A stretch of 64,000 nucleotides of DNA, taken from Octopus sinensis (Eukaryota). The stretch's first letter is position 1, and every line of letters starts with the position of its first letter. A program made the translations under genes and the position numbers. The stretch covers positions 17,235-81,234 of the forward strand of contig NW_021833114.1 of assembly GCF_006345805.1 (NCBI RefSeq), read 5' to 3'. The notes under the pieces were generated by a model. That model saw only the letters and a program-made list of their open reading frames with translations. It ran no database searches and was not told the origin of the DNA. Positions 5,614-60,090 of the stretch are shown here, piece after piece.

Positions 5614-6524
5614 ATGTCATCGATTGAAGAACGAAGAGAAGCAAGGCGTTTAGCAAGGTCACAGAAAAACGCAGCTCGTAATAATGACGAGAACGGTAAT
5701 CAGCGGAAGAGTAAAGAAACGGTTTTAGTTGATTAACTAATATCAGTCTTCGAGATTATCTCGAAAAGATTCTGCAAGATCACGCTTTTATAGCAATGAA
5801 GAAGAATCTCTACTCTCCCCAGGACAAAATACTTATACATATAAGTTCGACGAAAAGCCCGGTGAAAATCAAAGTTCTGAAAATAACGTTGAAAGCGATA
5901 AAGCCGTTGAGGTAATGTAAATTATTTCAATTAAAGGAAAAAAATGACATAATTTGTGAAACTACAGATAATTCACATCTTGAAGATAACAATACACCAA
6001 TATTAAAAATTTTTGATCCGGTGTATAATAAACATGAAGAAGAAAATATAGAAAATCAGCCATCTATCAACGAACCCCTGACACCTATCAGTGTATGCGA
6101 TCTTTTAATAAATATAGTCTTTTACTAAAATAAAAAGTCAAAATTTTCTTACTCAAGAAAAACGACAACTACTCAAAGTGTGATTGAATCTAAAAACTCT
6201 AGAAAATAATAATGCAAAGAGTACATCAACTCGCCAAAGAAGAGGCTTTGCGAAAGGAAATAGACAGGAGGCAATATGTAGAAGGATTTCTCACTCAATT
6301 TCGAGGAGATTTTAATTCAATGAATGAAGGTAAAAATATGGATTAATATGTTAGCAACACTGCAAACTCGAATGAAAGATATGAACAAATTGATTCAGAG
6401 TATGAAAGAAGATAACTTAGAGGCCCATATGAAATCTCGTAAATTAGACTTTGAAGTAAAATATAGTATAATGATCTAGGTAAACGAATTGACGTGCAGG
6501 CTTAGCAATAGAAGCGGAAAATAG
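5614..6524 (+). CDS. Hypothetical protein with C-terminal coiled coil (about 253 aa, 6 introns)
   Basis: Removing five 25-nt and one 24-nt GT-AG introns gives an open frame, MSSIEERREARRLARSQK...VNELTCRLSNRSGK*. Confidence 0.75.
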
Positions 6525-10820: not shown

Positions 10821-11940
10821 ATGTCCCAACTGTCACGAAGTAAATTAGCACCTCCTAGTTCGCAAACCAGTTTGAGAAAGCTTAAAGAAGAAGAGGAGTG
10901 GACAAGACATGCCAACATAATGTGTGACAGAAGAGTTGTTCGCGGAAATACATATGCTCTTCCACTCATTCAAACCTGCGCTCCCAAGGAACCACAAAGA
11001 CCAAAGAGAAAAAATTTTCCAAGAAAAGCTAACACAGCATCTCCCTCACCAGTGAAAGGACGCTTACATATCGAAGTTCAGACTGAACTCTATCTCGAAG
11101 AACTGTCAGAACGAGTAGAAGAAATTGAGGCCGAAATACAGACCGACACATTTATTGACCGTCCAAAAACTCCTCTGTTTATTCCTGCAAAAACTGGCCT
11201 CGATGTTACTACCCAAATTTATGAGGGAGATGTACGATTGTCAATTCGGGTTTAGAGTCAGTTGTTTGACTTCGATATCGAAGTCGTGCCTATCTTGGAA
11301 GTTATCGTGGGGAAGACGATCGAGCAGTCACTTCTTGAGATTATGGAAGAGGAAGAGTTAGCTAACCTCCGCGAACAACAAAGACATTTTGAGGAACTGC
11401 GGAGTGCAGAATTAGTCGAACAACAAAGGCTTGAAGAACATGATAGACGACAAAAAGAAGAAAAGGTTTAAAGCAAAATTTGGATTGCAAGGAGAACAGA
11501 ATTAGCCAGCAACGGGCCACCCTTCTCGTTGAAAAGGAAACTGCTAGGAAAATGGCGGCCAGAGCATTGGCTAAAAGTTACTTAACTGATTTGGTTCCTT
11601 CCGTGTTTGACGGTCTTCGGAAAAGTGGGTATTTCTATGACCCCGTCGAGAGAGGTCGAATTAATTACTGTTTTGTTAAGAGCTTGAACGGGTCTGCATT
11701 CCTGTCTTGATGAAGCTTGTTCGGAATAAGTTGGATTGCGTCAATATAGGTTGTGGAATCATTGACCAAATCATAATCGATGCTAGCAGTCTTTTCAGTC
11801 AAGTTGAAAATTCTTTAGAAATGTCTAACGAGTCTCTACGCTTTAATCAGGAGAACGCACCTTTGAAAGAGGCCGATCAGTCGGAAGTTCTGTTGACTTT
11901 ATCAGAAAACAGTGTCGACTTAAATAAAACCACAATTTGA
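10821..11940 (+). CDS. RSPH3: Radial spoke head protein 3 (about 345 aa, 3 introns)
   Basis: NIMCDRRVVRGNTY, GRLHIEVQTELYLEEL, FIPAKTGLDVTTQIYEGD|LFDFDIEVVPILEVIVGKTIEQSLLEIMEEEEL; introns 11232-11261, 11466-11491, 11655-11680. Confidence 0.95.
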
Positions 11941-14642: not shown

Positions 14643-15249
14643 TTATTTCTTGATCACAGTGTCTCCGTGTTTCCTATGATGTAGAAGTAGATGGTCAGAA
14701 CGGGAAAATTTTCGATGGCAAATCTCACACTTGAAGGGTTTGAGACCCGTATGTTTTCGTATATGTCGTTGAAGTTCGTCCGATCTTGCAAAAGTCCAGC
14801 AACATCCTGGCCAAGTGCAAGAATATGGTTTCTCGCCTAATTGTAATTAAAGTCAAGAAACCCGTGTGACTTCGAAAATGTGTTTTAAGATGTGAACTTT
14901 TCATGTAAGACTTGGAACACCCCTGAAATGAGCATTTAAATATGCGTTTCTGTTCACTTTTATCAGGATGAAGCTTCTTAGTTGTGTTTTTAGCCTGGGG
15001 AAGTATCGATTGATATGTTTGAAAGGATTGTTTGCAGTATTGAGTAATCGGAGGGTCAAAGATTATGTCATTATAATTATTGTATGTTTCATATGGGTTA
15101 TACAACATATTTTGTTCGTGAAAATGCTCATAGTATTGTTGGTCGTAGTACATATAGTCGTAAAAACCATTTATATATTCTTCGGGATTTTCTGAGTATA
15201 TTCCATCAGTGTTATAATAGTCCATCAAAACACAAATAACAAATGGCAT
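14643..15249 (-). CDS. Kruppel-like factor with three C-terminal C2H2 zinc fingers (about 193 aa)
   Basis: [27 protein letters not shown]|[52 protein letters not shown] after removing a 25-nt intron (14837-14861). Confidence 0.93.
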
Positions 15250-18096: not shown

Positions 18097-18960
18097 TTGT
18101 TGTCAATGGTTATGAACTACGAAACAAAATTAAAGATTGCTAAATTGATATCGAAGAAAAAATTATCTGAAAGACAGATAATTCAAAAATATAAAACTAG
18201 CAAAGGCATGATTTCACGAATAAAAAAAACAATTGTGCCTTTTCTTGAACAAGGAACTGTAAACACGGATGAAGATCCTATGCCTTATTGTGAGAAATCG
18301 AAATTTGGTGATCAAGTTTTTGAAATATTTCAGAAACTACGGGAAGATAAAGTTCCAATATCAGGTCCTTTCATAAAGAAAATCGCCTTATATACGGCTT
18401 CAAAGATTGGATTTGATTCCTTCAAAGCTTCAAACGGCTGGCTTGACAGATTCAAAAAGCGTCATGAACTGAGATTCAAATTAATTTGTGGAGAGAAAAA
18501 TTCATCTGACCTAACTTACATAAATGAGTTTTTTAAAATCCTTGACGAGAAAATTGCGGAATATGGAAGAGAAAATGTGTTTAATTGTGATGAAACAGCG
18601 CTTTATATAAAAAGGACACCGAGAAAGTCGTTTGTCGGAATAAATGACGATACTTTTGGCTTTAACCGTACTTCTTTGTTGCAATTCTATGGGAGAAAAA
18701 CTTGAGCCATTGATTGTTGGAAAATTTAAAAACCCTCGATGTCTCAAAAATTTCAATGTGAAAGATTTTGGAATTTCATACTCATCATCTAAAAATGCAT
18801 GGATGACTGGAAATATTTTTATGAGCTGGTTGACTCGGATAAATGAAAGATTTTATACAATCGACAGAAAAGTATTAATATTGCTTGATAATGCGGGATG
18901 TCATAAAACTATTGAATGCTAAAATATTGAGTTTTTATTTTTGCCAAAAAATACAACTGT
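18097..18960 (+). pseudogene. pogo/Tigger transposase pseudogene
   Basis: FKASNGWLDRFKKRH (CENP-B HTH), VFNCDET, AWMT, LLDNAGCH; frameshift near 18650. Confidence 0.88.
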
Positions 18961-19799
18961 ATTTGTTTTTTGTCGTTACTTTTCACTAATTAAAAAAATG
19001 AAAATCCGAATGAAGCAAGAGAAAAGGTTTTGTAGCATCTAGCTTGTTTAGTATGGGACCAAAATGTAGGCTTTTAAGGTGTCACTGGAGGAGTTTAAGG
19101 TGATATTTGAGTACACGAATTGTAAAATAGAGTATTTTTACTTTAAATAATTCGTTCGGTTTTGGAATCCACATTACTTATTAAACCGACTATGATTCGG
19201 ATTAGATTGTTTCTAATATTGGATAATCCAAATCCAGTGAGGTAGAATAGTAAAACAAATTTAAACTAGTATCAAAAATACTCCCGATATGTTAAGGACT
19301 TGAAGAGGATGACGGTTATTGGAGAGATCGATTTTTAATTTGAATTGTAGCTGAATCCAATTTATCAATTTAGTTATCAAATGAAATCTTATTAGATAAC
19401 TAGAAAAATTTATCTTTTTACAAATTTTGATTAGTGTTTAAGAAAAGTCAAAGAATGCTTATTTTTCAATAGGATTAAACTTTTTTTTATTTTGCCAGAT
19501 TTATGAAAAAGCAACTAAAAACCAACTCCGTGTTTTTTTGGCAGTCAGGTTGTGTATGCTTCCTTATAGAAAGATAAAATGAAAGAAAAAAACTCCAAGA
19601 CGATGGAAACTCTCAGGATAGTGGGGTGAAATCCCTCCGTTTGTCATGGGTGTAATAAAATCAACACCAGGAAATGTGGCGTTTTCTCTTTAATGTGTAA
19701 TAAATTCAAGCTGTACACATCCACCCGATATCTACCTGGTATGTTTTTGATGTTCCTGTCAGGGGTTGGTATTGTCGTGAGAATGTGACTTGTATGTTT

Positions 19800-19915: not shown

Positions 19916-20473
19916 AAATGTAAAGATGAGGCAAAAAATTAAGTTCTATAAATGTCAAAATAGTCTGAAAAGTTTTTGAGGAGGCGGCAATGTAATTCCG
20001 AATATTACATTCGTATTCTCCCGCATCTTTTACATACCCCCTATACATTGTCGCTTCCATGACAAAAATAAATCTCTATAATATTTAAATCTGCGAAACA
20101 CGGCGATTAAGATTTGCTGAATCTATATATTCACCAATTAATTGTACTAGGAATTATCTATCAACTTAATAGTTTTGCACTGTCTAGTTTTCCAGGCGAG
20201 AGACTGACGCGATCGAGAAAGAGTTAGAGCGTACTGTCGCAAGAGATATCCGCTCAAAAAACCATCTCGACTCGCGAGCGTCGCCTGTGAATATAGACAT
20301 CCGAAATCCGGTAATCTCCAAGTTTCGACCAAGTATAAATCTCGACGTATAAGCAATAGATTTTAATTATTTTTTCATTATTTATTAATTTAGTTTGATT
20401 TTAATGGGATTGTCTATTGGATTGTCTGGATTTTCATATTTTTTAAGAATAAAAATTAAGCCGAAAAATCGTA

Positions 20474-22284
20474 CAGTTTACCCTCTATTGCTCGCCATTT
20501 CTATAACTCGCCACTTTTTTGGAAAAAATGCCATTTTTACTAAGGAAATTCCATTGCTCGCCACGTTTTAGTATTAAAAAATTAAAATTTATTATTAAAA
20601 AAAATAATTTTTTCAAATATTTATACCGCGTGTTTTTTTTTGTAACATGAGGAAGTGCTCAAGATTATTTTATGATCAAAAAAGAGAAATTATAAATTAT
20701 CTTATTGATAATTCTTCTCTAAGTCTAAGGCGTGTTTCAGAAATTTTTTCGTCGCGTTTCAAAAAATCAATTTCGAGACGTGCAATTAACGATCTTAAAT
20801 TGAACAAACAGAAGATTCTTGGAATTAATCCAATTTATGGGAGAAGTTCTCGTTTTTCGAAACTTAGATATTCAGCAATTGATTCTGAAATTATTGCCTG
20901 GATAGATTACATGGAATCTATTGGAGTTTGCCTCAATGATGAGATAATTTGTCGAAAGCAACTGAAATTGCTGCGTTAAATCTCTTCGAATTTAAAGCCA
21001 GTAAAGGATGGCTTGAAAAGTTCAAAAAAAGGCACAATGTAAAACTAAGAATTTTTCATGGTGAATTGGAATATACTGCGGATGAGTTCAAAGACCAAAT
21101 CGAAGACTTTAAAAAAATTATCTCTTCTAAAATAAATGAATATGGTTCAGAAAATGTTTATAATGCCGACGAAACCGGCGTATTTTACAAGACCATTCCA
21201 TCAAAAAGTGTCTGCAGGAAACGCCAACCAGGACAAAAATTACTTAAAGATAGGTTTAACATTTTTAGCTAATTTTCAGATTTTCATTAATGCTTTGGGC
21301 AAATATGACTGGATCCGATAAAAGAACCCCTTTGATGATCGGGCAGTTTAAGAAACCAAGGTGTTTTAAAAACTTGAACGTTGATGAATATTTACAATAC
21401 CGGAATTCTTCAAAGGCTTGGATGAACATGGAAATATTTAACGAATGGTTGTATAATTGGAACAAGACTCTCAAACAAAAACAAAAAAAGATACTTTTGG
21501 TTGTAGACCATTGTCCTTCACATAGAATAACAATCGAATTAAGTGATTCAAATCATTCAAAATCATTCAAATCTCATTTCAACAAATTTAAATTTAAACA
21601 TATAATTGAACAAATAACGCAACTATTGAATGCTATAAAAAATTAACCCTGAAAGATGCAGTCTTATTTTCTTATCTAGCCTGGAAAGGTGTGTCAGTGG
21701 ATAAAATATCAAAATGTTTTCAGCACGCCAAATGGGAAAACAGAATTGAAGAACCTATTATGGGAGACCATAAAATAAAAAATTTCGAACAAATTATAGA
21801 AAAATTAATGATCACAGATCCCATAAAAGAGAAGGAGTTTATAGACTTTACGTACTCTGAAAATGACGAACTTCATGAATTTGTTCAAAACAATAACTAT
21901 GAAAATAACGATGAAAATGCAATTTTAGACAGTTCAATTACTGAAGATTGTGAAAGAAACAACTGTATTACACATCGAGATGCGATAAAATGTATTTTTC
22001 ACATGACGATAATTTTGATGTGAATATGCTAGAAAGTTTTTTAAAAATGCAAAAAAATATAGAGAAAAGATCATACAAAAAAACTATAAATGATTGCTTA
22101 CTTAAAATTTTGGTTTTTTAAATAAATGTTTCGGCTATTTATTTAAATGTTTAGATAGTTAAAAATTATAGAAATTTTTTGTTGATAGAAAATAGGATAT
22201 TGATTATTTCTCTTACTCGCCAAATTCTCTTAGTCGCCAATTTTGGCTTGGTCCCAAAAATGGCGAGCAATAGAGGGAAGACTT
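20474..22284 (+). mobile_element. pogo/Tigger transposon with decayed transposase and a 26-nt intron
   Basis: TA|CAGTTTACCCTCTATTGCTCGCCA left TIR and matching right TIR ending at 22284|TA; FKASKGWLEKFKKRH, YNADET, KAWMN, VVDHCPSH. Confidence 0.9.
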
Positions 22285-23191
22285 TATTTGTAAACTATTA
22301 GGAGCAGAAATTGCAGCCGCATCAACAATAGACAATCCCATTTAAAATTATTCAATGTTGGCCATTGCATTCCACGTTTTTGAGGTATTTTTTTAATTAT
22401 ATGAGAAGTTTGGCGGGAAACAACGGTTGAAAGAGTAGGTGGTTGGTATATTTGTTAGTTTATTGACGATGTGTGTTTTCTTTAATTTATTAATATTAAT
22501 TATTTATTTCTAACAAGGAATTATTTTAATAAAATTTTAAATAATTTATTCTCTTGTGGTTTATACTTGGTCGAAACTTGGAGATTACCCGAAACCCGAT
22601 CTCCCGGTATCTTGGGAGGAAAAGCAATCAGCTTCATCAGCTACAAGAAGAATAAATTATGATAACGCCCAGTTACGCGTTCGCGATGTGACATATTATT
22701 TTGGTTATTATCACGTTTATTTACTTTTATTTTTATGAAATTATAATAAAATATTAAACATTTCATGTTTATCATATTAATAAACTCTTCCTCGAGTCTA
22801 CATGCTACTCGAGTAACTCTTACTCATATGAGCACTCTTTCGTCTTTTTAGAGTCTGTCTTTATATTCGGAGATTTCATGCACTTCATCAGGAATGCGTG
22901 CCCATCTATTTGCATAAGAGTTATCCGCGGGTAAAGGGGAAACTTGAGTAAAGTCAGTGCGATGATATCTGGTATCCTCCTGTTCGCCTCGGCATTTGTC
23001 TACCATTGTTCGATTCCGCACCGATATCAGACAATCCTGCTTTCCAATATTTTTTTGTTATTTTTGTGAATAAATAAAATCCTGACTAAAGTATAGATGA
23101 AAGCTTAACTAGGCGATCTCCATAAAAAGAAATTTTATATTTATATATTAATCGTTTTTATAGTTATTCATTGTGTGGTGGTATCAGGTCA

Positions 23192-24280
23192 ATGCCGAAA
23201 TGGCTTGGAAGTAGCAAAAAAAAGTCGAAAAACAATTATGATGTAATCTACGGTGAATTATGTGTGATTGGGTAATGAAGATTAATTCTAAACACCAGGA
23301 GTGGCCTTGAGATTGGGGAGTCATTGCGACGTCGCCCTCGACAAACATTGTTCAGAAGGAACGTGGCAAACGGAATTAATGGAGAAATGTTATTAGAAAG
23401 AACTAAAATTGTAAATGAAGGTAGTGACTGTGTAGCGTAACAAAAACTATTCGGTGAAATTTAACGAGGGAATTTGGGAATACGAGGCAGACGATTCCCT
23501 GGACATGTTCCAGATCGGTCGGTCACCAGGAGAGACAAACGACATTGTTATGGAAGATAATTTGACTGTATCTCGTTTTGCTTGTCGTCTGCTCGTCTCC
23601 CGCGACCCTCCTCACACTACGAAATTATATGCGGGAGGATTTAACGATGAACACTTCCTCACACTTAACCAATCTTTCCAAAGACTCGGGTCGTGGGATG
23701 GATTCACGACCAACGGAGTTTTCATCAGGCATGCCGGGCCTGCTCAGGAATGGAAGGAAGTGTCCGTAAGAGGTGGTGTCTTTCCTCATCGAACGATTCG
23801 AACGTCAATGGAACCTTGTGGGGACAACACTCTCCACGATGGCTCACTCATTGATTTGGGTGGCCTCACTTTTATTTGGAGGAATCCCTTCGCACGACTC
23901 ACTACTCCCGTACTGATTAATTAATTATTTTAGGATCCACAATCACTCGCATTACCGACCACTTTTTCCCATGTATTCTCTGGATGTGGTCATGTCTCCA
24001 ATGAAGATAAATGCCAGGTGTGTCCGATTATCAGTCCTATCCGTCCACTTCTTCTTGGAACTCAGACTTGTTTCTATGTCGATGATAATAAACTGACACA
24101 CTTTTTTACAGCATGTGGACATGTCACCACTCACCTGACTGCAAAGTTATAGTTCCGTGATAAAACTTTAGGTTCTGGGCTAATACTAAATTACCATGTG
24201 AACAAGACTTTAGGGCTGTTTGTCCTTTTTGTCGTACTCCATTAGAGGGCCCTGCATTTCTTTCTCTTATACTTTCTTGA
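23192..24280 (+). CDS. PELI: Pellino E3 ubiquitin ligase (about 328 aa, 4 introns)
   Basis: YGELCVIG, DMFQIGRS, VSRFACRL, DGFTTNGV, LHDGSLIDLGG, and C-terminal CGHV...FYVD...CGHV...CPFC RING; introns of 27, 25, 24 and 26 nt. Confidence 0.93.
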
Positions 24281-33646: not shown

Positions 33647-36600
33647 TCAATCAGTAGGAATTATTTTGGGCAGTTTTGCTTCCTATTGAATGGCGGATTA
33701 AATAATACTTGAGGAGGCATAGATCCAAGTCGAGTAAGCTCAGAATATTGCAAATCAATTTGCCTTTGTGCCTCGATAAGGTTTTTTTCAAGAATTGCGT
33801 TTTTCGTATTTGATGCTATCATTGCAAGCGTTTGTGCAGAATCGTTGTTTTCCTGATTACGATGGATTCCGAGAGCAACATGAAGGTCATGAATTTGAGT
33901 AAGAGCTTGTTTAAGTTCTTTTCTTAAATCATTTATTTCCTTGATGAGACAAACATTTTCCTTAATCTAAAGGAAAACAGAAAACTTGAATTATCTTGAC
34001 ATGATCGGCTCGATTGAGTTGCACGTCTTTAACAAGCTTTTTCCTTAATGAATGAACCGTTTTTTCCAAATGTTCTCTTTGCCTATTGTACTCGTTCTGT
34101 AAGTCAGAATCAAGCGTCGCCACTTCCAACTGTCAATGTCGTCATCTCTTAAACTTACAATGTTCCCACGAGCGTGTTTTTTGTAGAGTTGTCTGATCCT
34201 GTTCTTTAATTCTTTTGGGTCTTGTATGTAGGCAATACAACGATGTAAGTCTGTTTGGAATTTCCTGATGACGAAATCCTTATCTCTCACCTGTGAACTA
34301 ACGAATGTGGGCTAACGAATTGACGTTCTTTGAGCATTTCCTTCTGAGTCTGTTTTAATTTTTCCGTGAGACTAGCAGCATTGAGATCAAGTTGAGCGTT
34401 TTGTTTGTTAAACTTTTCTAACTCACTTTCCATTTCCTTATAGTCAAAGTGCCCCTCCATTCACCTGGATTTGTTCCTTCATTGCTTTGATATAATTTTC
34501 CTTGGGCTCAATTTGTTTCTTTAATTCTCTGATCTTGTAGTCCAACACGAATTTGAACTTTTCAAGTTCCTGGTTTTTCTTTTTAATGTCGTAGATCTTT
34601 TTTTCCTATAAAAATATATGTAATCAAAAAAGTTTACTTTATCCTGAATTACGTCATCGCGCTCTTCTACTTCTTTTCTGAAACTCTGAATATCTCGTTC
34701 AAGGTTGCGAATCACATTTGCTTGTTTTCCGTTTTCAGTTTGCAGAACTTTCAGCTCGTCTTTCAAATCGTCAATTTCAGAAGTGAGACTCGAGAACTAA
34801 AATTACAATCACCTTGTACTTTCTTTTTCATTATTCCCGACTCACTCTTGAGTTTTGTGTTCATTTCCCTTTCGTCTCTGAGTTTGCGTTCAAAGTTATT
34901 CTTCAGTTCGAGAATCTCCTGATCCGCGTCTTCTTCGATCTGATTCCTCATTTCCTCGTGTTCTTCCTGCTGAGATGCGATGACTCCTTCAGCCTACAGT
35001 CACTCAAATTGGAATACCCGCTCATTCTGTCGCCGCAACTCGTCCAATCTGACTTGGTAATATTCCTCCAATTCGTGAAGAGCTTCTTCCTTGTCGAATT
35101 CTTTTGAATTTAGTTGATTTTCATAGTTTTCCTGAATTGTCTGGGACTTGGATTGTAGAAGTTGATACTTTTCATATTCCAGCAACAACTTTTGGCTGTG
35201 GGAATCATCTGATTATTAAAACTATAGGCTTAACTCATGTTTTGTATTTCCCTCATGTGGTTCTCCTCGTTCACTCCCATAATATCTTTATACCGATTTT
35301 CTAACGACTCTTTTTCGTTCAAAGACTTGAGGTAGTCTGCTTTCCAGTTTTCAGTCTCAGTAGAAAATTTATCGGTCAGTTCCTTAATTTTTTCTCCGTA
35401 CATGAGATCTTTTAATCTGAGTTGATATTCATTCTCCATCTTTAGTTCACTAACTCTTGTTTGGAGGTCCACAATTGATGCGTTCTGAATGATATGCTAT
35501 TATTCTACCTTATCTTCTAAATCACTTTTGGTAATCAAAATCTCTTCTGAGTATTCAATTTCAATTGACTGTTTTTTGATGATTGGTTCAGTCACTTTCC
35601 ACACAATCATAGTTCCGTCTTCCGCAGTTGTAAATATTGATGTACCGTCATATGATAGTCTAATCTTGAAGTAAATATACCAAAACTTACTCGAGTAACT
35701 GCTGTGGAGTGTCCCGACTGAATTGTGTATTCAGGAGTGCCCATAATCGGGAACTTTATGGAGGAAAACTGTCCAGAGCTGGTTCCACAGTACAAAAACC
35801 TTCCAGAGGGTGACATAACAATTGCCGTGAATGGCACTCCTGGTGAATCAGCCTCGTGGCTGACCTAAGAATCCAGTAATAAATGAATGCACATTGGAAT
35901 TTGATATTTCTCTCAGTTTATTGTCCGACCCGACAACACACGTGCATTTTCCATCTACAGAAGTAGTCAAGTCATAATAATTGCAATGTTTGAGAACATG
36001 TTCATTGGTTCGAATTCCTGAAAGTATGATCGAACGAGCAACCTGTAATTAAGTCCCATTCGTAAACAGCGCCGTCCGAACCACAGGAGTGCAATCTGAG
36101 GTCGTTCATATTCCACTTTAAAGAGGTAATTCTTGAATTGTGGCCTTTGAGATTAATCATATTTTCAAATGTGATTGAGGAAAATATTTGAATCACATTC
36201 GAGTTTGCAGCTGCAAACAAATGTCCCCCATTACTGAAGCGACACTGAATACTTTAACAATTATAATTAACTTCTTGGCATAACTTAACAAGGAATTCTT
36301 TCACAATTTTCATGTCATCGATAAGTAGACTCATCAACCGCAGTTTATCGGTGAACCCCACCAAAATGTACAACCCTGACGGATGAAGAGATACGCAATG
36401 TATTTCCTGACTGAATTCCTTTACGAATTCTAAATTGCTGGAAAAGTAATTTTCTTAGCTACCAACTCGGTCTCGTAGTTTCTTACTGCAATAGATCGAT
36501 CATTTCCGGTGGTCACTACGAGAGTCTTGCGAATGCAAACGTCAAGACCTTTAATTGCCTCAAAATGATTAAATTGTCCTAAATTTTCAAAGTGACAAGC

Positions 36601-37715
36601 GTCTTTCTACAGATAAACCAGGTTAAACACTTTGTCGATCGTCGTCGAATTAAGTGAAAACCAAAATATTTGTCCCATACTGGTCGAGCAGATTAAGGAT
36701 TCTTCTGCAGAACTAATTGCCAAGGAATGAAATGTCTGGTTGGAGAGACGACTTTCTGCGTTGAATTCGTCAAATTCAACCTGAAAATGATTGAAAACAG
36801 AACCTCTATTTTTTTACTAAAAGTGTATTCCTTTCCCTTTTCATAGTTAAGAACCAGGGAAGTTCCATAGCCAAAAAAGATTCCCTTTGAGTAGGCGCAG
36901 ATTGATGTCACTGGAAAGGTCACTCTACTGCTAGAATATTAGTAGAAAACGCTGAAGTATCGTAGGGAACCAATTCACCCTGCATTTCGCCCGATTCCAC
37001 AAAAATGAGTTTTCCCTCTAACGTCCCGGCTATTATCTTGTCTTCAGAAATCCACGTGTGACAAGTGTAATTTAGAGAGTCGAGTTTATGTGAACTAAAG
37101 ATTTGTAGTATTCCTTCGGTGTAGTGGAAGAATTTAAACATGTTTATTCCACTGACACATATTTGAGTGTTGTCTTCAGGATTGAATGATATCTATAATG
37201 AAATAAAATCTGTATCAACCTGGGATATCTCCGCAGTAATCTTTGACAAAATTGGTTTGGTGATGGATAGAACTTTTGCTTTTTCCCAAAGCCAATACAG
37301 AATTGTCCAATCGGGACCACTTCCAACCACCGCCAAATACTTTGAGTCAGAAGAGAAGGCCATGCAGACGACAGGAACAGATATCAATTCTGCACTCGTC
37401 AAAACTTTTTTGCGTCGAAGAAGAACTAGGTCGTAAATGCAAATGCTTGTTCTATCCAAATTCTCTGCTACAGCTACATATCTAATCTCATTTGACTGGG
37501 AAATACCGCTTATTTGGACTAAATGCCACAGCTGTCATTCCCTTAGAATTCTCACAGCATTGAATTATTTTTTGTTCTCTTGTATCTTTATTATGTAAAA
37601 CGATGTTGTTTCCGGCTGGAAAGACTAAAGTCTGTTCGTCTGTGAATGATATGTTGTTTTTTAAAGCAAAGTTGATTCCGTAAATATGATGAGGCTTAGC
37701 AGACTCGAGTGACAT
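33647..37715 (-). CDS. CFAP57: Cilia- and flagella-associated protein 57 (WDR65), many short introns
   Basis: N-term [28 protein letters not shown]...AFSPNKR|YVAVAE, WD40 repeats ([14 protein letters not shown]), coiled coil, C-term [17 protein letters not shown]. Confidence 0.92.
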
Positions 37716-40616: not shown

Positions 40617-40765
40617 TATACACACTTAATAAAATGATTAAAATTTATTCATAATTTATTAATATTTATAGATATTTGTTCTTTTCAAATGAAATTATTA
40701 TTGTTTTACGTATTTTTAATTTTTTTTGTTTACATGCGTAACGCTTTAATTTTTTTTGTTTACAT

Positions 40766-42692
40766 ACACTCTGATCTCCCTGCCCTCATCAAAGAACAAA
40801 AGGAGCTAAGACTACAACTGGAAAACACATCTGATCCGAAGAAGAAACAAATCTTACAGAATAGACGTTCATCTACCCAGAAAAAAATCAAAATGTTGAA
40901 CAAGACAAACTTCACTAACAAACTCGACTTAATAGCTGCAGGAATTGAACAGCTAAAGGACTCTTCAAAAATGTTTACGGCAATCCGCCTACTCAACAGG
41001 AAAAAACAAACTAACAAACTCAAAATCCATGACAGCAATGGAAGATTCATCACAAATCCCAAAGAGCAGGCTGAATATATAGCCTCGTATTTCGAGAGTA
41101 TATTAACCGCTCACGGAGAAATATCCGATTACACCAGCGGATACACCACTCATCTCAGCCTACCTATCACCACCGGTGAAGTATCAACTGCAATAGCCAA
41201 ACTTAAAAATGGCCGCTCCTCTGGACCGGATGGAATAAATTCAGAACTGTTTAAATACGGACCGCCTGCACTAACAGACAAACTGGCGGAGCTACTCAAT
41301 GTATGTTTATGAAAAAGGAATTCCTCGGTCTTGATTCCGGATTATTAATACCGATCCAAAAGCCTAACAAGCAGGCTGGGCCTGTCGAAAATCTACGCCC
41401 TATAATCTTGCTAAACACCTTACGGAAACTTTTGGGATTAGTTACACTGAACCGAATAAGAGAACAAGTGGACAACTATCTATCCCCGAGTCATAGTGGA
41501 TTTAGGACAGGAAGATCCACCGCCGATGCTGTCTGGGCCCACAAGTGGTACTGCGCTATCACCCAGAGATACAAAAGTGCAACAACAGTCCTGGGAATAG
41601 ACCTGTCTAGGGCCTTTGACACGGTACGCCGTGGTCTACTCCTCAAAATACTGGAACAATTCCTGGACCCTGACTCTGTCAATATGATAAGAGTACTACT
41701 ATCGAACACAAAGCTCAAGGTGCGGGTCGGCACGGCGTTTTCCCGTGAATTCACGTGCAACGTCGGTACCCCTCAGGGAGACGCCCTCTCGCCGTTGCTA
41801 TTCGTGATCTATCTGGAGACGGCACTACGAGACCTTCGAAAATTCTATGCTGGCAATATCGTCGAAATTGTATATGCAGATGACGTCGACTTCGTGTCAG
41901 ACGACAAATCGGCCTTACTTCGACTCCTTGAAGTGGCACCTGCTGAGCTGAACAGATGGTTCCTTAAAATGAACGTTGGAAAAACCGACATCGTTGAAAT
42001 CATGAGGATGGAGAGCAGCTCAAGTGAAGCCTGGCGCAAAACGAACAAACTCGGTTCTCTACTTGGGGACGGCCATGATATTGTCAGAAGAAAGGCTCTC
42101 GCTTGGGCCACGATGAACAAGATAAAGAAAGAGTGGATCGGCAAACGACGACTCTGTACGTCACTTCGTCTGAGGATGTATGAAGCCTTTGTCAAACCAA
42201 TCCTGACATATAATTCGGCGACCTGGGGAATGTCTAGTACTGAACAACGTGGACTCGATTCTTTTCACCGCAGGCAACTTAGATCCCTACTGGGATTGAA
42301 CTGGCCTATAAGAATCAACCAGGAATCGCTATACAATAGATGCAGAACTGGCCCTCTGAGTGTGGAAATCGTCAATATGCGGTGGAGGTTATTTGGCCAT
42401 ATTCTACGAATGGACATGCTTGCCCCAGCTAACATAGCAATGGAGGGCTACTTCCTGAAAGAGGGATCGAGCTTCCGTGGACGTCCACGTGTTACGCTGC
42501 CGGAAACACTTGACGGAGACCTGAAATGTGTGAAGAAAAGGCTAAGGAGTGGTGAGGATCTGGACGAGCTGAGGAAACTCGCTCACGACAGAGGAGGTTG
42601 GAGGAGGCTGGTTCAAAGGATTGTTTTTAATGCTGCACGAGTAAAATTATAACTAATATGATTCTACGTATGTTGCAAATAATAATAATAAT
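40766..42692 (+). mobile_element. RTE-clade LINE, 5'-truncated, one frameshift, inserted in the Ginger TIR
   Basis: GRSSGPDGI, LRPIILL, SGFRTGRST, DLSRAFD, GTPQGDALSP, YADD, WRLFGHILR; (AAT)5 tail; gcgtaacgct duplicated at 40736-40745 and 42693-42702. Confidence 0.92.
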
Positions 42693-48480: not shown

Positions 48481-48999
48481 ATTAAAAAAAATATTTATTA
48501 CACGTCCATACAGATTTTTTTATAAAATATATAGCTATTTTTAGTAACCAAAATAGTCGTCACGATTTTCATACTCTCGTAAGGAAGCTATAACAACGTA
48601 ACAACATTGATAAGTTTACTTGTTGGAAAAAATCTGAATACTTTTTGATAATTAAGAAATATCTTTTGATAATTAATGAATTAGTTGAAATAAGAATTCA
48701 TACAGTTATCAAAAAAATAATTAATATTATGCGATTAACTCATTGATTTTTTGTTTAAAGTAATTTTTTAATAAACCAACCAATAACTACAAGTTAATTA
48801 ATTAAAAGCTTCAAGGGCGGGAAACCGACGCGATCGAGAAAGAGTTAGAGCGTACTATCGCAAGGGATATCGACTCATTGATTAAATCCAAAACGTTGGC
48901 AATTTACGTCACTTTTATAAATTAAGAAGATATGAAAAAGAATATGGTTTTATTGACACAATAGCGAGAGAAGAGATAACAAAAAATTAGTCCAAATAG

Positions 49000-55361: not shown

Positions 55362-57666
55362 CAGTGTTCCCTCTAAGCTGCGCGCGTGCGCGGCCGCGCA
55401 GCAGTTTGCACCTTGCTGCGCAGCGAAATTTTTTTCTGCGCAGTAGAAAGTATAATATTAAAAATTGCTATTTTTTTTAATTTTTTATATGAATTTATAT
55501 ATTCTTATTTTCATTTCAAAACGAAAACGTGTCTATAATATTGATATGAGACTTAAGAAAAATTCTCCTTCTTTTAAGCCGGAATGGTTGATAGAGTACG
55601 TCGAAACCTTAACACCAGATTTAAAAATTCCCCAACATGTGCAACTGGGTGATATTTTTAGTTTTTCCGAAGACTGCGGAGTTGTTTGTAAAATATGTGG
55701 CGACGCTAAAGCGACTTGTGATTTTGCGAGTGGAAAAACCTGGGATATATGGAAATTGGATTATCTGAAGAGACATATTACCCATAAAATTCATTCAGAT
55801 TCAATAATAAAATTAAGAAGAATTCGAGCAGGAACTGGAATCAGCTGCTTGCTCACAGAGTCTAAGGATGACCGACAGATGAGATTCAAAATGAGTGATC
55901 GTGCACGAAGTAAGATTGAAAAAGTGAAAATTCTCATTGACAATGTTATTTTGGCTCTCTCCATGAATGCTTCATTACTTTCTGTTATGAATATACATGA
56001 TCATATGGCAAAATATGTAGAACTTCCTGATAGCTGGCGAAGTAAAAATTATGCATTTGAGTTTGTTGAATGCATCGACTACGTGGTCAAAGAGATATGT
56101 ATGCAGGAAATTAGAGAGTCTCGGTTCCATACACTCATTGTGGACGAAAGCACAGATATATCCGTAACCAAAATGCTTATTATATATATTAAATATCGTC
56201 CTACGGGGACAAATTATCACAAAACAGTTTTTTCTAGCATAATGAAACTTACAAGTTGTGACAGTAAATCTATTTTCATTGCAATCAAGAAATTCTACAT
56301 GACAAACAATCTTGATTTTCAAAAGATGGTAATGTTTACATCAGATGGGGCATCCGTTATGCTAGGGAGAAGAAATGGCGTGGCATCACTGATCCGTGCT
56401 GAGGTTCCTCATCTTACTGAACAACATTGCGTCGTTCACAGACAAGATCTAGGGATCGATGATGCATGGAAAAAAAATAATCTTGTGAAAAATATTGAAA
56501 TATTACTCCGGACTGTTTATACTGTTTTCAGTCGATCAAGTATAAAAAAAGCTGCATTTCAGGACCTGGCTAATGTTGTTGTTGAAGATGTCGTTTCATT
56601 TAAGCCACTAAATGAAGTGAGATGGATGTCTCGGCATTTTACTGTTAAAGCTTTGATAAAAAACTACACAATTTTAATTGAATATTTCAAGAAACAGGTT
56701 GAAGATGATAATGATCCGATTGCAAAATATTGCTTAAAACAACTTCAAAATCCTCTTATTCATGTTGCTTTAACTGCCTTAAATGAAATTTTGGCTGAAT
56801 TAGCAGATTTGTGCACAGTCTTCCAAAGAAGCTGTATATCGACCATAGAAGCTGTACAGTTTGCCAGAGCAAAAATTTCGAAGCTGAAATCTCAATATTT
56901 GGATGGAAATGAAATTTACTGGAGTGACAGTGTGAAGATGTTGTTATCAACAACTGGTTATGGAGATACAAATACAGATGAAATCCTATGCTTTATCGAG
57001 CATGTTTATCTGCATTTACAAGAAAGATTTCCAGCTGACGAATTAAGAGAATGGGTAGCATTTGACACTCAAGCAATTCAAAATCAGACAAACTTTGAAT
57101 TTGGAAAAGAGGAGATAATTAAATTAGCGAAAAAATATGAAAATTTACTCTCTTCAGAAGTCCCACTCATAAAACTGCAGTCGGAATATACAGATCTCAA
57201 GTTTATTTTAAAAGAAAAACTGCACTCTGGTGCTTTGAAAACATTTGAAGATGTAATTTACTATATACTAGCGGAGAAAAAATTTTCAGCCACTGCAACA
57301 TTTGTGGATATTTGTGGCACATTTCAAGCGTCGAGTGCTGATGCTGAACGTGGATTTAGTTTGATGAACTGTATCAAAACTAAACTACGTAATAGACTTG
57401 AGATTGACCATTTGGAGATGATCATGCGAATCAAGTTCTATTTAACAAGTGGGAATACAGTGGATCTTGATCGAGTATACAAATTTTGGATACAAAATAA
57501 AAACAGAAGAGAATATCCAATTGACTAGACCTATTTTTTTAACCATTGGTTTTTTAATTGTAAAATTTCCCCCCCCCCAAAAATTTTTTGCACACGTCAC
57601 TTTATAACGCTGCACAATGCAATGTGCCCAGCGCGCATAGCTACCACTCGCTTAGAGGGAACACTG
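55362..57666 (+). mobile_element. Full-length hAT transposon (ZNF862/Tip100-like)
   Basis: 16-bp perfect TIRs CAGTGTTCCCTCTAAG; 8-bp TSD gttacggc on both sides. Confidence 0.95.
55546..57528 (+). CDS. Intact hAT transposase (660 aa from ATG 55546)
   Basis: Zinc-finger C..C...H...H; IVDESTD, TSDGAS, CVVH, RW, SSADAERGFS; no stops, no introns. Confidence 0.92.
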   Translation: MRLKKNSPSFKPEWLIEYVETLTPDLKIPQHVQLGDIFSFSEDCGVVCKICGDAKATCDFASGKTWDIWKLDYLKRHITHKIHSDSIIKLRRIRAGTGISCLLTESKDDRQMRFKMSDRARSKIEKVKILIDNVILALSMNASLLSVMNIHDHMAKYVELPDSWRSKNYAFEFVECIDYVVKEICMQEIRESRFHTLIVDESTDISVTKMLIIYIKYRPTGTNYHKTVFSSIMKLTSCDSKSIFIAIKKFYMTNNLDFQKMVMFTSDGASVMLGRRNGVASLIRAEVPHLTEQHCVVHRQDLGIDDAWKKNNLVKNIEILLRTVYTVFSRSSIKKAAFQDLANVVVEDVVSFKPLNEVRWMSRHFTVKALIKNYTILIEYFKKQVEDDNDPIAKYCLKQLQNPLIHVALTALNEILAELADLCTVFQRSCISTIEAVQFARAKISKLKSQYLDGNEIYWSDSVKMLLSTTGYGDTNTDEILCFIEHVYLHLQERFPADELREWVAFDTQAIQNQTNFEFGKEEIIKLAKKYENLLSSEVPLIKLQSEYTDLKFILKEKLHSGALKTFEDVIYYILAEKKFSATATFVDICGTFQASSADAERGFSLMNCIKTKLRNRLEIDHLEMIMRIKFYLTSGNTVDLDRVYKFWIQNKNRREYPID

Positions 57667-57689: not shown

Positions 57690-60090
57690 GCAAGTACTGA
57701 TTGCTTGAGGAAAAAAACCCGGTCGGATTCAAAGGAGTCTTTGATCACGGAATTGAACCAATATCAATTAAACAAAAAAATTACGATCGAGAATGGGACC
57801 GTGCACAAATCCTGATACTTATAACGAGTTAAGAAGAGAAAAAAATCGCATGTTTAAGAGATTAGAAGGAAAAGAAATCTATGTTAAGAAAATTGACGAA
57901 CGTGTCAGTGAAATTGCACAGAACGCAAATGTTTCGTGCTGTTCGCCTTTTGTAGAAAGCAGCTCAAAACCTACAAATATTTGTATTCATAACAGCCTAG
58001 GAAGAACTGTTTTGGACAATAAAGAAAAGACTGAAATTATTGTTAAACATTTTTCATGACTTCTGAATGGAAATGATTCCACAGACGTGAAACCATTCGA
58101 CAAATCACCAAGAAGTCTGAATTTACCGAACTTCACTAAGAAAACTAACTTGGCTATCAAAAAATCAAACAAAAACAGGGCAACTGAATTAGACAACATA
58201 CAGGGAGAAAGCCGTTAATACAAAGATTTTCAATATGGTATTTGAAGCACACTCGCCTTTGAAGCTTGGTGATTGAATTTTAATCCCTTTTCATAAACCA
58301 GGAAAGAGCAAGAGACCGCTAAAATGATTTCAAAATACTCTGGTTAAAAATATTCAGTGCTTTTGATACTATTGACAAGAAAAAATTGTTTCTGAAAAAA
58401 ATTCCTAACGAATTTAAGAACTTTAATAAAGAAAAGACCGAACACATAAGAATCACAAGAAAATTAGAATATATTAATGAAACATGGAGGGAAAAAGGAA
58501 ATTGGGGTTCTTACTTGCTGATAGTGAGTACATGATGTATAGAAGAGTCCTAGCCACTGCAATGTATAAGAAATGTAAAAAATATGGAGTCGGCCAAAAC
58601 TAAACAAAAAAACCTACAAATGAGGCTATGCAACTCATGCATAAAGCCAGCACTTATGTACAATTCGGGTATACGAAAAGTCACAGAATCAAGAAAATGG
58701 ACATTTCATCGAAGGCTATCACGCAATTTAAGCGGCCTAGATTGCCCAAAAAAGAGATTATATACAATAACTTGTACTCTATGACCCAATCGGTTCCAAT
58801 AATCACTGAAATTATCAAATCAAGATGGAGGCTTTTTTGGCATAAACATTCCCGCAAACATGATAATGAACTTATGATAATGAACAATTACTTTAACAAC
58901 GAAAAAAAAGATTGTTCAGAAAAAGACGTACAGTCACCCATCCTGTTGCTCTAAATCAGACGTCACCAAACTACGGCCCGCGGGCCGGATCCGGCCCGCG
59001 ACAACATTTTATCCGGCCCGCGCACTATTTCGAGATATTCAATTAATACCTTAATAATTAACTTAAATAAAAACTTTAATTAAAAAATTAAACTATTTTG
59101 CAAGATTTAATTCGAAAAAAAACTTATCAGCATTAACGTTAAATTTTTCTTTGTTGCTATGTCTAATATGAAAAGAAAGGTTGACCGCGAATGCCGTGTA
59201 TTCAATAAATTATGGGAATTGAAGTATTTTTTTGCGAAAGATGAATTAAAGCAGAAAGCTTATTGTTTAATATGCCACGAACATCTCTCTGTTATGAAGG
59301 ACGTCAGTTTTCACACTTTTCTTGTTTTAAAAGTTTTTGTGAGGCAAACTGTAATGAGATCGACATTACTTTCCAAATTGGAATTATCAAAGAATTAAAA
59401 CATCATTTTTTACATAAGTTTTCTGAACTTGACAAAATTGAAAGCGATATAATTTTGTTCGAAAATCCATTTTCTTGTAATGTTGAAAATGTTCAACATG
59501 AATTACAATTAGAAGTTATTGACTTACAATCAAATGAACAGCTCAAAGATTGTCACAGACGGACCAAACTCGCTGAGTTCTACGAATATCTCAAGGATGA
59601 TGAGTTTCCGAGACTAAAGAATTTTGCGATAAAGATGATTTCTATATTTGGCACAACTTACCAATGTGAGCAAACGTTTTCGAGGATGAAATATGTTAAG
59701 TCTGCCCATCGTGCAAGATTGACTGACGGACACTTAAAATCAATTCTCATGATAGGATGCAGCAATTTAAAACCAAATATTGATGAACTTATCAAAAAAA
59801 GATCACAGTTCCATAGCTCTCATTAAAATTTTTGTTTACTTTATTTTTATTTAAATTAGTTTTTATTGTAAAAAACACACTTATGAATTTCTAGTAAAAT
59901 TATAATCCTATGCACGTGCTCCGGCCCGCGTTCATTGTGTTGGGGTCAATCCGGCCCGCGAGTGCAAAAAGTTTGGTGACCCCTGCTCTAAATAATGATC
60001 TTAATAAAATTTTTAGAAAACTCAAATGTGCGGGCGACCTAGAAGAACTGCGAGCAAATGCGAGTAACAAATACCTATGGAGACGCTAGA
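57690..60090 (+). mobile_element. Degenerate RTE LINE, interrupted by a hAT
   Basis: CIHNSLGRTVLDNKEKTE, AFDTID, SRWRLF, and after the hAT LNNDLNK...DLEELR; colinear with 40766-42692. Confidence 0.7.
58957..59985 (+). mobile_element. Internally deleted Buster/SPIN-like (GTF2IRD2-like) hAT
   Basis: TIRs cagacgtcaccaaact / agtttggtgacccctg; TSD ctctaaat; N-term KRKVDRECRVF..W...CLIC fused to C-term FGTTYQCEQTFSRMK. Confidence 0.92.

Follow-up and report, generated by a model that had tools for sequence, protein, structure and literature searches.

The DNA analysed here is a stretch of 64,000 nucleotides (nt), called the window throughout, from contig VCDQ01001671.1 of the Octopus sinensis assembly GCA_006345805.1 (NW_021833114.1, positions 17,235 to 81,234, forward strand). 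It contains a decayed copy of a pogo/Tigger-type DNA transposon whose transposase gene is interrupted by 26 nt with GT and AG ends, and this putative spliceosomal micro-intron is the subject of this report. Further copies and a relative were obtained from the DNA behind 'octopus' protein matches, at three loci of the same assembly: L001 (VCDQ01001748.1), L002 (VCDQ01012648.1) and L003 (VCDQ01001570.1). The features of the window copy, in window coordinates, are as follows.

20472..20473 (+): left TA target-site duplication, directly outside the terminal repeat; L001 also has TA on both sides, within different flanks
20474..22284 (+): whole pogo/Tigger-type DNA transposon copy, decayed, 1811 bp; its terminal repeats bound the L001 homology, and its protein matches Pfam DDE_1 and HTH_Tnp_Tc5
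20474..20500 (+): left terminal inverted repeat CAGTTTACCCTCTATTGCTCGCCATTT, 90% complementary to 22258-22286; L001 homology begins here
20647..21253 (+): transposase predicted exon 1, DNA-binding part with HTH_Tnp_Tc5, from translation and alignment to L001 and L003
21254..21279 (+): 26-nt GT-AG segment, putative phase-2 spliceosomal micro-intron, from its sequence, its sharing with L001 and L003 and restoration of the open reading frame (ORF)
21280..22105 (+): transposase predicted exon 2, DDE_1 catalytic domain and C-terminal part, from alignment to L001
22258..22284 (+): right terminal inverted repeat; L001 homology stops here
22285..22286 (+): right TA target-site duplication, beside the repeat in the window and in L001

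On the basis of its terminal inverted repeats, its TA flanks and the pairing of HTH_Tnp_Tc5 with DDE_1, the element is a pogo/Tigger cut-and-paste transposon of the pogo superfamily of IS630-Tc1-mariner. The terminal inverted repeats are 27 nt long and start with CAGT, with TA flanking both sides in the window as well as in L001, and the conceptual protein matches DDE_1 (PF03184, 5.9e-23) and HTH_Tnp_Tc5 (PF03221, 5.1e-13), both above cut-offs. The catalytic triad of the family is found in NADETG, VVDHCPSH and QPMDQG (DD30D in the L001 sequence). The earlier note on this DNA had described the window copy by the 26-nt segment alone, a picture that is incomplete: compared with the other copies it has lost 1 nt at 20947/20948, 3 nt (in-frame) after 20980, 54 nt (in-frame) near 21559/21560, 10 nt after 21616, 19 nt after 21992 and 1 nt after 22097, which makes six private indels in the aligned coding region, with two more in the 5' subterminal region. 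The 54-nt deletion takes out the LPKNTT...QPMDQG region including the third catalytic Asp. The window copy is an inactive relic, a pseudogene that yields no transposase whether spliced or not. At the pogo ends (window 20482-20562 and 22205-22275; L001 188-300) there are subterminal TTGCTCGCCA / ACTCGCCA-like repeats, with two more units in L001 than in the window copy (16- and 17-nt indels), and these may be candidate transposase binding sites by analogy with those described for Lemi1/Emigrant.

The segment at window 21254-21279 reads gtttaacatttttagctaattttcag, starting with gtttaac and ending with tttcag, such that its 26 nt open with GT and close with CAG; a branch-like CTAAT motif lies 8-12 nt from the 3' end, and the CAG follows a TTTT run. 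A search of the window that tolerated up to 3 mismatches gave no second occurrence of the segment. The upstream frame ends in ...QKLLKD followed by AG and the downstream part, which lies in a different frame, starts with A followed by FSLMLWANMTGSDK; excising the 26 nt rebuilds an AGA (Arg) codon split as AG|A, a phase-2 interruption, and gives the predicted spliced junction AAAGATAG|ATTTTCATT, also given as AAAGATAG|ATTTTCATTAATG. Read without excision, the frame reaches a stop after 5 codons (KDRFNIFS*). The site coincides with the N-terminal boundary of DDE_1, where the DNA-binding module gives way to the catalytic domain. On re-reading, the coordinates, sequence and peptide junction that the earlier note had assigned to the segment proved correct, and the gap-free match that it had reported after removal of the 26 nt extends to an alignment of the junction with 46 pogo homologues.

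An alternative that has to be weighed at this point is that the 26 nt are filler that inactivated the transposase of one copy, that this non-autonomous lineage was then multiplied in trans by an intact relative, and that the GT...AG ends and the host-like length are coincidental; on balance we regard this as unlikely. In its favour, GT..AG pairs 24-27 nt apart are common in this AT-rich DNA (10.7 per kb per strand over the whole window, both strands). However, when random 26-mers of the window were put at random positions of the coding sequence and exact GT..AG excision was scored, such excisability arose in 0.4% of 200,000 trials, and this before the match to the host intron length is taken into account.

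Next to the window copy, two further loci hold copies that cover the site. The L001 copy is 97.7% identical to the window copy over 1567 aligned bases and has the segment at the same site (5711-5736), with one T>C change and with GT and AG kept. The L003 copy is older (about 91% identical) and is truncated 13 nt past the segment, which here is 27 nt long and differs from the window by 1 inserted T and by 3 substitutions, of which L001 has one as well; even in this decayed copy a 26-nt GT...AG is still there, one base downstream. A second L003 fragment, the fourth fragment overall, ends short of the site. The earlier note had named a situation in which most copies lack the segment as one that would speak against an intron; the segment is instead present in 3/3 copies covering the site, on three contigs. 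Because it occupies the same site in copies on other contigs, it is a family-level feature and not a private insertion, and within the window and the fetched loci it occurs elsewhere only inside copies of this pogo family. The same comparison bears on an assembly or sequencing artefact of the window contig, for which it could be said that this is a long-read assembly with several other frame breaks in homopolymer runs. This explanation is refuted by complex sequence of 26 nt on three contigs with its own substitutions in each, and we give it a negligible probability.

The copies also allowed reconstruction of the ORF, for which the longer variant was chosen at each private indel between the window and L001. 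The defects of the L001 copy are a 4.7-kb insertion and a 1-nt deletion, and L003, where it overlaps, agrees with L001 on the first two window deletions in that it keeps the extra bases. (The 4.7-kb insertion spans L001 451-5175 and lies within codon ~28 of the transposase.) The reconstructed sequence has one ATG-to-stop ORF of 506 amino acids (aa) only with the 26 nt removed; otherwise a stop falls inside the segment, which is the sole interruption of this ORF. The 506-aa protein has HTH_Tnp_Tc5 at residues 75-136 and DDE_1 at residues 202-372, the latter covering profile positions 1-177 of 177.

It argues against an inactivating insertion that, apart from the segment, the 1.5 kb of the family consensus contain no stop or frameshift common to the copies, despite about 9% divergence between copies and frequent private indels. 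The ratio of nonsynonymous to synonymous substitution rates (dN/dS) is 0.62 for L003 versus the consensus and 1.17 for the two young dead copies (window and L001), the latter value being one of neutral decay. In the 184 nt where the two older fragments align with the two young copies, 4/6 subfamily differences are synonymous while about 20% are expected (binomial P about 0.02), an enrichment that likewise counts against a dead lineage multiplied in trans. These comparisons of sequence suggest that the master lineage was still protein-coding while both subfamilies carried the segment.

Relatives of the family lack the segment. In L002, which belongs to the P0004 family (48% aa identity), the site reads AAG GAT CGA TTT TCG in one frame, and a second pogo copy in the window (18097-18970, + strand), of another family with 40% protein identity, has no insert at the homologous site. 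The finding of relatives without the segment implies that the 26 nt are extra DNA gained in the family and not coding sequence turned intron. We found no intronless sibling of the family, L002 with its 48% protein identity being the nearest intronless relative, and this too is at odds with an inactivating insertion. P0002 (JGI, 38% identical) has a continuous ORF but was not counted as an intronless genomic relative, since it could be a transcript. The second pogo copy of the window has a 1-nt frameshift near 18655 and is truncated past the NIEFLFLPKNTT motif.

We then compared the segment with introns of host genes in the window and in L001. The following were identified.

11232-11255 and 11466-11491 (+): introns of 24 and 26 nt in an RSPH3-like gene, from the strict scan
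14837-14861 (-): intron of 25 nt in a KLF-like zinc-finger gene, directly after HTG of the zinc-finger linker
23192-24280 (+): Pellino introns of 27, 25, 24 and 26 nt, whose removal gives a complete 328-aa ORF
35485-37506 (-): introns of 24, 26 (or 23 or 20), 27 and 25 nt in a minus-strand gene, from the strict scan
locus L001: introns of 25 and 32 nt in the beta-galactosidase host gene

The spliced 328-aa Pellino contains the Pellino_FHA and Pellino_RING domains. Together these 13 inferred host introns measure 24, 24, 24, 25, 25, 25, 25, 26, 26, 26, 27, 27 and 32 nt, and as they are mostly 24-27 nt long, a length of 26 nt is typical of this genome. The host-like size claimed in the earlier note is thereby borne out, 26 nt falling into the modal host size class and the GT-AG ends being canonical. 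Its appeal to a pyrimidine-rich CAG end as a hallmark of host introns did not hold up: published intron logos of Dicyema japonicum show GTa and AG only (PMC13644364), and a position weight matrix built from the 13 host introns fails to separate them from decoys. The matrix was accordingly dropped as a discriminator; it ranks the true Pellino introns 5th-8th of 25 candidates, no better than the segment, such that sequence signals neither support nor refute an intron.

Introns of this size point to the origin of the contig, whose host genes are in this respect unlike those of an octopus. Among animals, introns below 30 nt have been reported only in dicyemids and some myxozoans (PMC13644364), and dicyemid introns have a median of 27 bp (PMC6543705). 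The contig has a GC content of about 35-36% (30-44% per 2-kb window) and dense repeats, compared with 36.7% GC and 49% repeats in the D. japonicum genome (PMC6736024); D. japonicum material was taken from O. sinensis kidneys. Its Pellino is 30-34% identical at most to any animal homologue. The best protein matches of the transposase are RefSeq models labelled Octopus sinensis, one of which, P0003, derives from the window itself; the sequence retrieved for its contig agrees exactly with that of the window. The introns below 30 nt, the GC content and repeats, the divergent proteins and the source, an animal that harbours dicyemids, make it very probable that the contig is DNA of a dicyemid kidney parasite carried into the octopus assembly, the species being deduced from these sequence features, and the L001, L002 and L003 contigs are probably parasite DNA in the host assembly likewise.

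Given its position, its ends, its sharing between copies, the restoration of the ORF, its absence from relatives and the host intron size, we consider it likely, with good confidence, that the segment is a true U2-type (GT-AG) spliceosomal micro-intron of the transposase gene of one pogo/Tigger family. We infer, rather than observe, its actual removal from RNA, the identity of the host and the mode of origin. A spliced mRNA would encode the full 506-aa transposase, and an unspliced one a 206-aa DNA-binding fragment ending in KDRFNIFS, just before DDE_1.

Several observations weigh against an intron. First, an intact autonomous copy is absent among the copies seen, the window copy being frameshifted, L001 disrupted and L003 truncated; with all three defective, none is shown to be active, a point in favour of an inactivating insertion. 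Second, the site is covered by no more than three copies, a near-identical pair among them. Third, the evidence for selection comes from few sites, all upstream of the segment. Fourth, the third base of the segment is T where host introns prefer A (5/13 local introns are also GTT), and with the position weight matrix the segment ranks 5th of the 26 GT..AG candidates in the gene. Fifth, transcript support is absent, a further point for an inactivating insertion: neither a spliced nor an unspliced product of the family is among public predicted proteins, and JGI metagenome contigs scanned for exact matches to either junction form returned nothing. The protein search, in turn, gave no close relatives outside the O. 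sinensis assembly and none from transcriptome-derived proteins.

A different way of restoring the frame would be removal at the DNA level, with the segment being an internal eliminated sequence that is cut from somatic DNA in dicyemid chromatin elimination. Dicyema has been reported to eliminate DNA and to contain extrachromosomal circles, and the size of the segment resembles that of the shortest ciliate eliminated sequences. In animals, eliminated sequences so short are not known. Circular contigs are mentioned in PMC6543705. However, the segment is bounded as AG|GT...AG|A, and neither by TA...TA nor by any excision-type repeat, and in size and ends it is indistinguishable from ordinary introns of host genes in the window, all of which makes DNA-level removal very improbable.

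If the segment is a micro-intron, it would have arisen when extra DNA was inserted at the AG|A site, once the family had separated from its intronless relatives, and would have stayed at about 26 nt through the whole observable history of the family. We tentatively propose, as one possibility that we hold to be less probable than not, that it was born near its present size: a frameshifting insertion of ~26 nt at AG|A of an intronless transposase gene could have been rescued at once by splicing, since the dicyemid spliceosome needs little beyond GT, AG and the right length. An intron placed exactly at the border of the DNA-binding and catalytic modules could, if retained, also give rise to a regulator of transposition that only binds DNA. 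Origin of the segment by local duplication was considered and rejected, as its inverted similarity to the upstream exon is 13/16 (p about 0.05) and a direct ATTTTCA repeat has p about 0.4; the weak inverted similarity could also hint at repair-derived filler, in line with an inactivating insertion.

Short introns in transposase genes of this superfamily have precedents. The pogo element of Drosophila melanogaster has two ORFs joined by a short intron, and the transposase genes of Tc1 and Tc3 of C. elegans contain a small host-type intron. In the Arabidopsis pogo-like element Lemi1 a putative intron overcomes a frameshift at residue 385 (PMC1636448). In all of these, as in the window family, one short host-sized intron has to be removed before the transposase ORF is complete, and in Lemi1 the intron is likewise deduced from relief of a frameshift, although residue 385 is not the site of the 26-nt segment. 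Use of the host intron type by a transposon gene is to be expected. What differs from the known superfamily introns is the length, 26 nt being below the limit of roughly 30 nt long assumed for animals.

Ultra-short spliceosomal introns of dicyemid host genes are described by Lu (2019, PMC6736024), by Zverkov (2019, PMC6543705) and in PMC13644364, and reportedly by Ogino in 2010. The pogo segment resembles these host introns in its length class, its GT-AG ends and its almost complete lack of further consensus. It differs from them in that it lies in a mobile element and is absent from related elements, such that it must be a lineage-specific gain, whereas dicyemid host introns are described as inherited, shrunken and at conserved positions. 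Mobile DNA has been tied to intron gain before, in the introners, transposons that become introns (Huff, Zilberman and Roy 2016, as cited in PMC9942856), but here the relation is the reverse, with the intron inside the transposon's gene, and the 26 nt have no inverted ends, no target duplication and are not a repeated unit, as an introner would be.

A likeness to the P element should be added. In the P element, retention of the third intron gives rise to a truncated repressor. By analogy, the unspliced message of the pogo family would encode a DNA-binding protein (206 aa) without catalytic function, and one may speculate that intron retention has a regulatory role like that in the P element; unlike there, regulated retention and a repressor are for the pogo family only a possibility suggested by the position of the intron.

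Short host-sized introns in transposase genes of the superfamily and dicyemid micro-introns are thus already known, and what is new is the combination of an intron of <30 nt in an animal transposon with a clear non-inherited intron in a lineage described as intron-conservative. It follows that the ultra-short size class would also be reachable by a recently acquired intron and not only by ancient introns shrunk in place. The copies of the family give the gain a rough time scale, and they provide a multi-copy natural test case for what recognition of a 26-nt intron needs amid ~ten look-alike GT..AG pairs per kb. If the intron was indeed born at its present size, an animal lineage credited only with inherited, shrunken introns would offer a de novo gain that can be dated, and splicing would be able to neutralise small insertions in micro-intron genomes.

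A parasite origin would also affect the public annotation. If the contigs are parasite DNA, the RefSeq 'Octopus sinensis' proteins P0001, P0003, P0004 and P0032 would be mislabelled. P0003 ('tigger transposable element-derived protein 6-like') is a chimera in which window 18112-18670 is joined to 21680-22023, ~3 kb apart; its N-terminal part comes from the second pogo copy and its C-terminal part from the decayed copy that carries the 26 nt. P0001 ('beta-galactosidase-like'; L001 6001-10227) fuses a pogo transposase tail to the host beta-galactosidase and, in place of a true 25-nt GT-AG intron, GTAATTTATTAAATTTATAATATAG, shows a 31-nt gap, with the loss of two conserved residues. As P0003 joins two pogo copies and P0001 mis-sizes an intron, RefSeq gene models were ruled out as evidence of splicing. 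Introns under about 30 nt seem to be beyond what the annotation software can represent. The contig and several RefSeq 'Octopus sinensis' proteins appear to be parasite DNA in which unmodelled short introns have led to gene models that are truncated or chimeric.

Where the earlier note had seen a sign of a genome-level process, the strict scan of the window recovered host introns but yielded no second micro-intron in a transposon that convinces. Removal of its candidates at 18668-18695, 20975-21006 and 41249-41277 would delete conserved residues, and they are ordinary frameshifts. The last of these, a 29-nt GT..AG candidate, is not an intron for this reason and lies in a LINE-type reverse transcriptase (40689-42652, + strand) that is spread over two ORFs through a simple frameshift near 41300. 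Searching all loci blindly for GT..AG pairs that join two open frames gave too much noise to be of use; GT-AG exceeded the control dinucleotide pairs only slightly, at 24 and 27 nt. The window also has, at 55465-57528 (+ strand), an uninterrupted 687-aa ORF that is hAT-like by sequence reading, possibly an intact transposase and without a micro-intron, and a related, internally deleted copy of it at 59111-59826. Finally, the pogo copy sits within a different element, whose long inverted arms lie at 20296-20339 and 22560-22603; a further pair of inverted arms surrounds it at 20399-20419 and 22326-22346, and a 62-nt piece just outside it (20195-20256) recurs at 48816-48877 with 89% identity.

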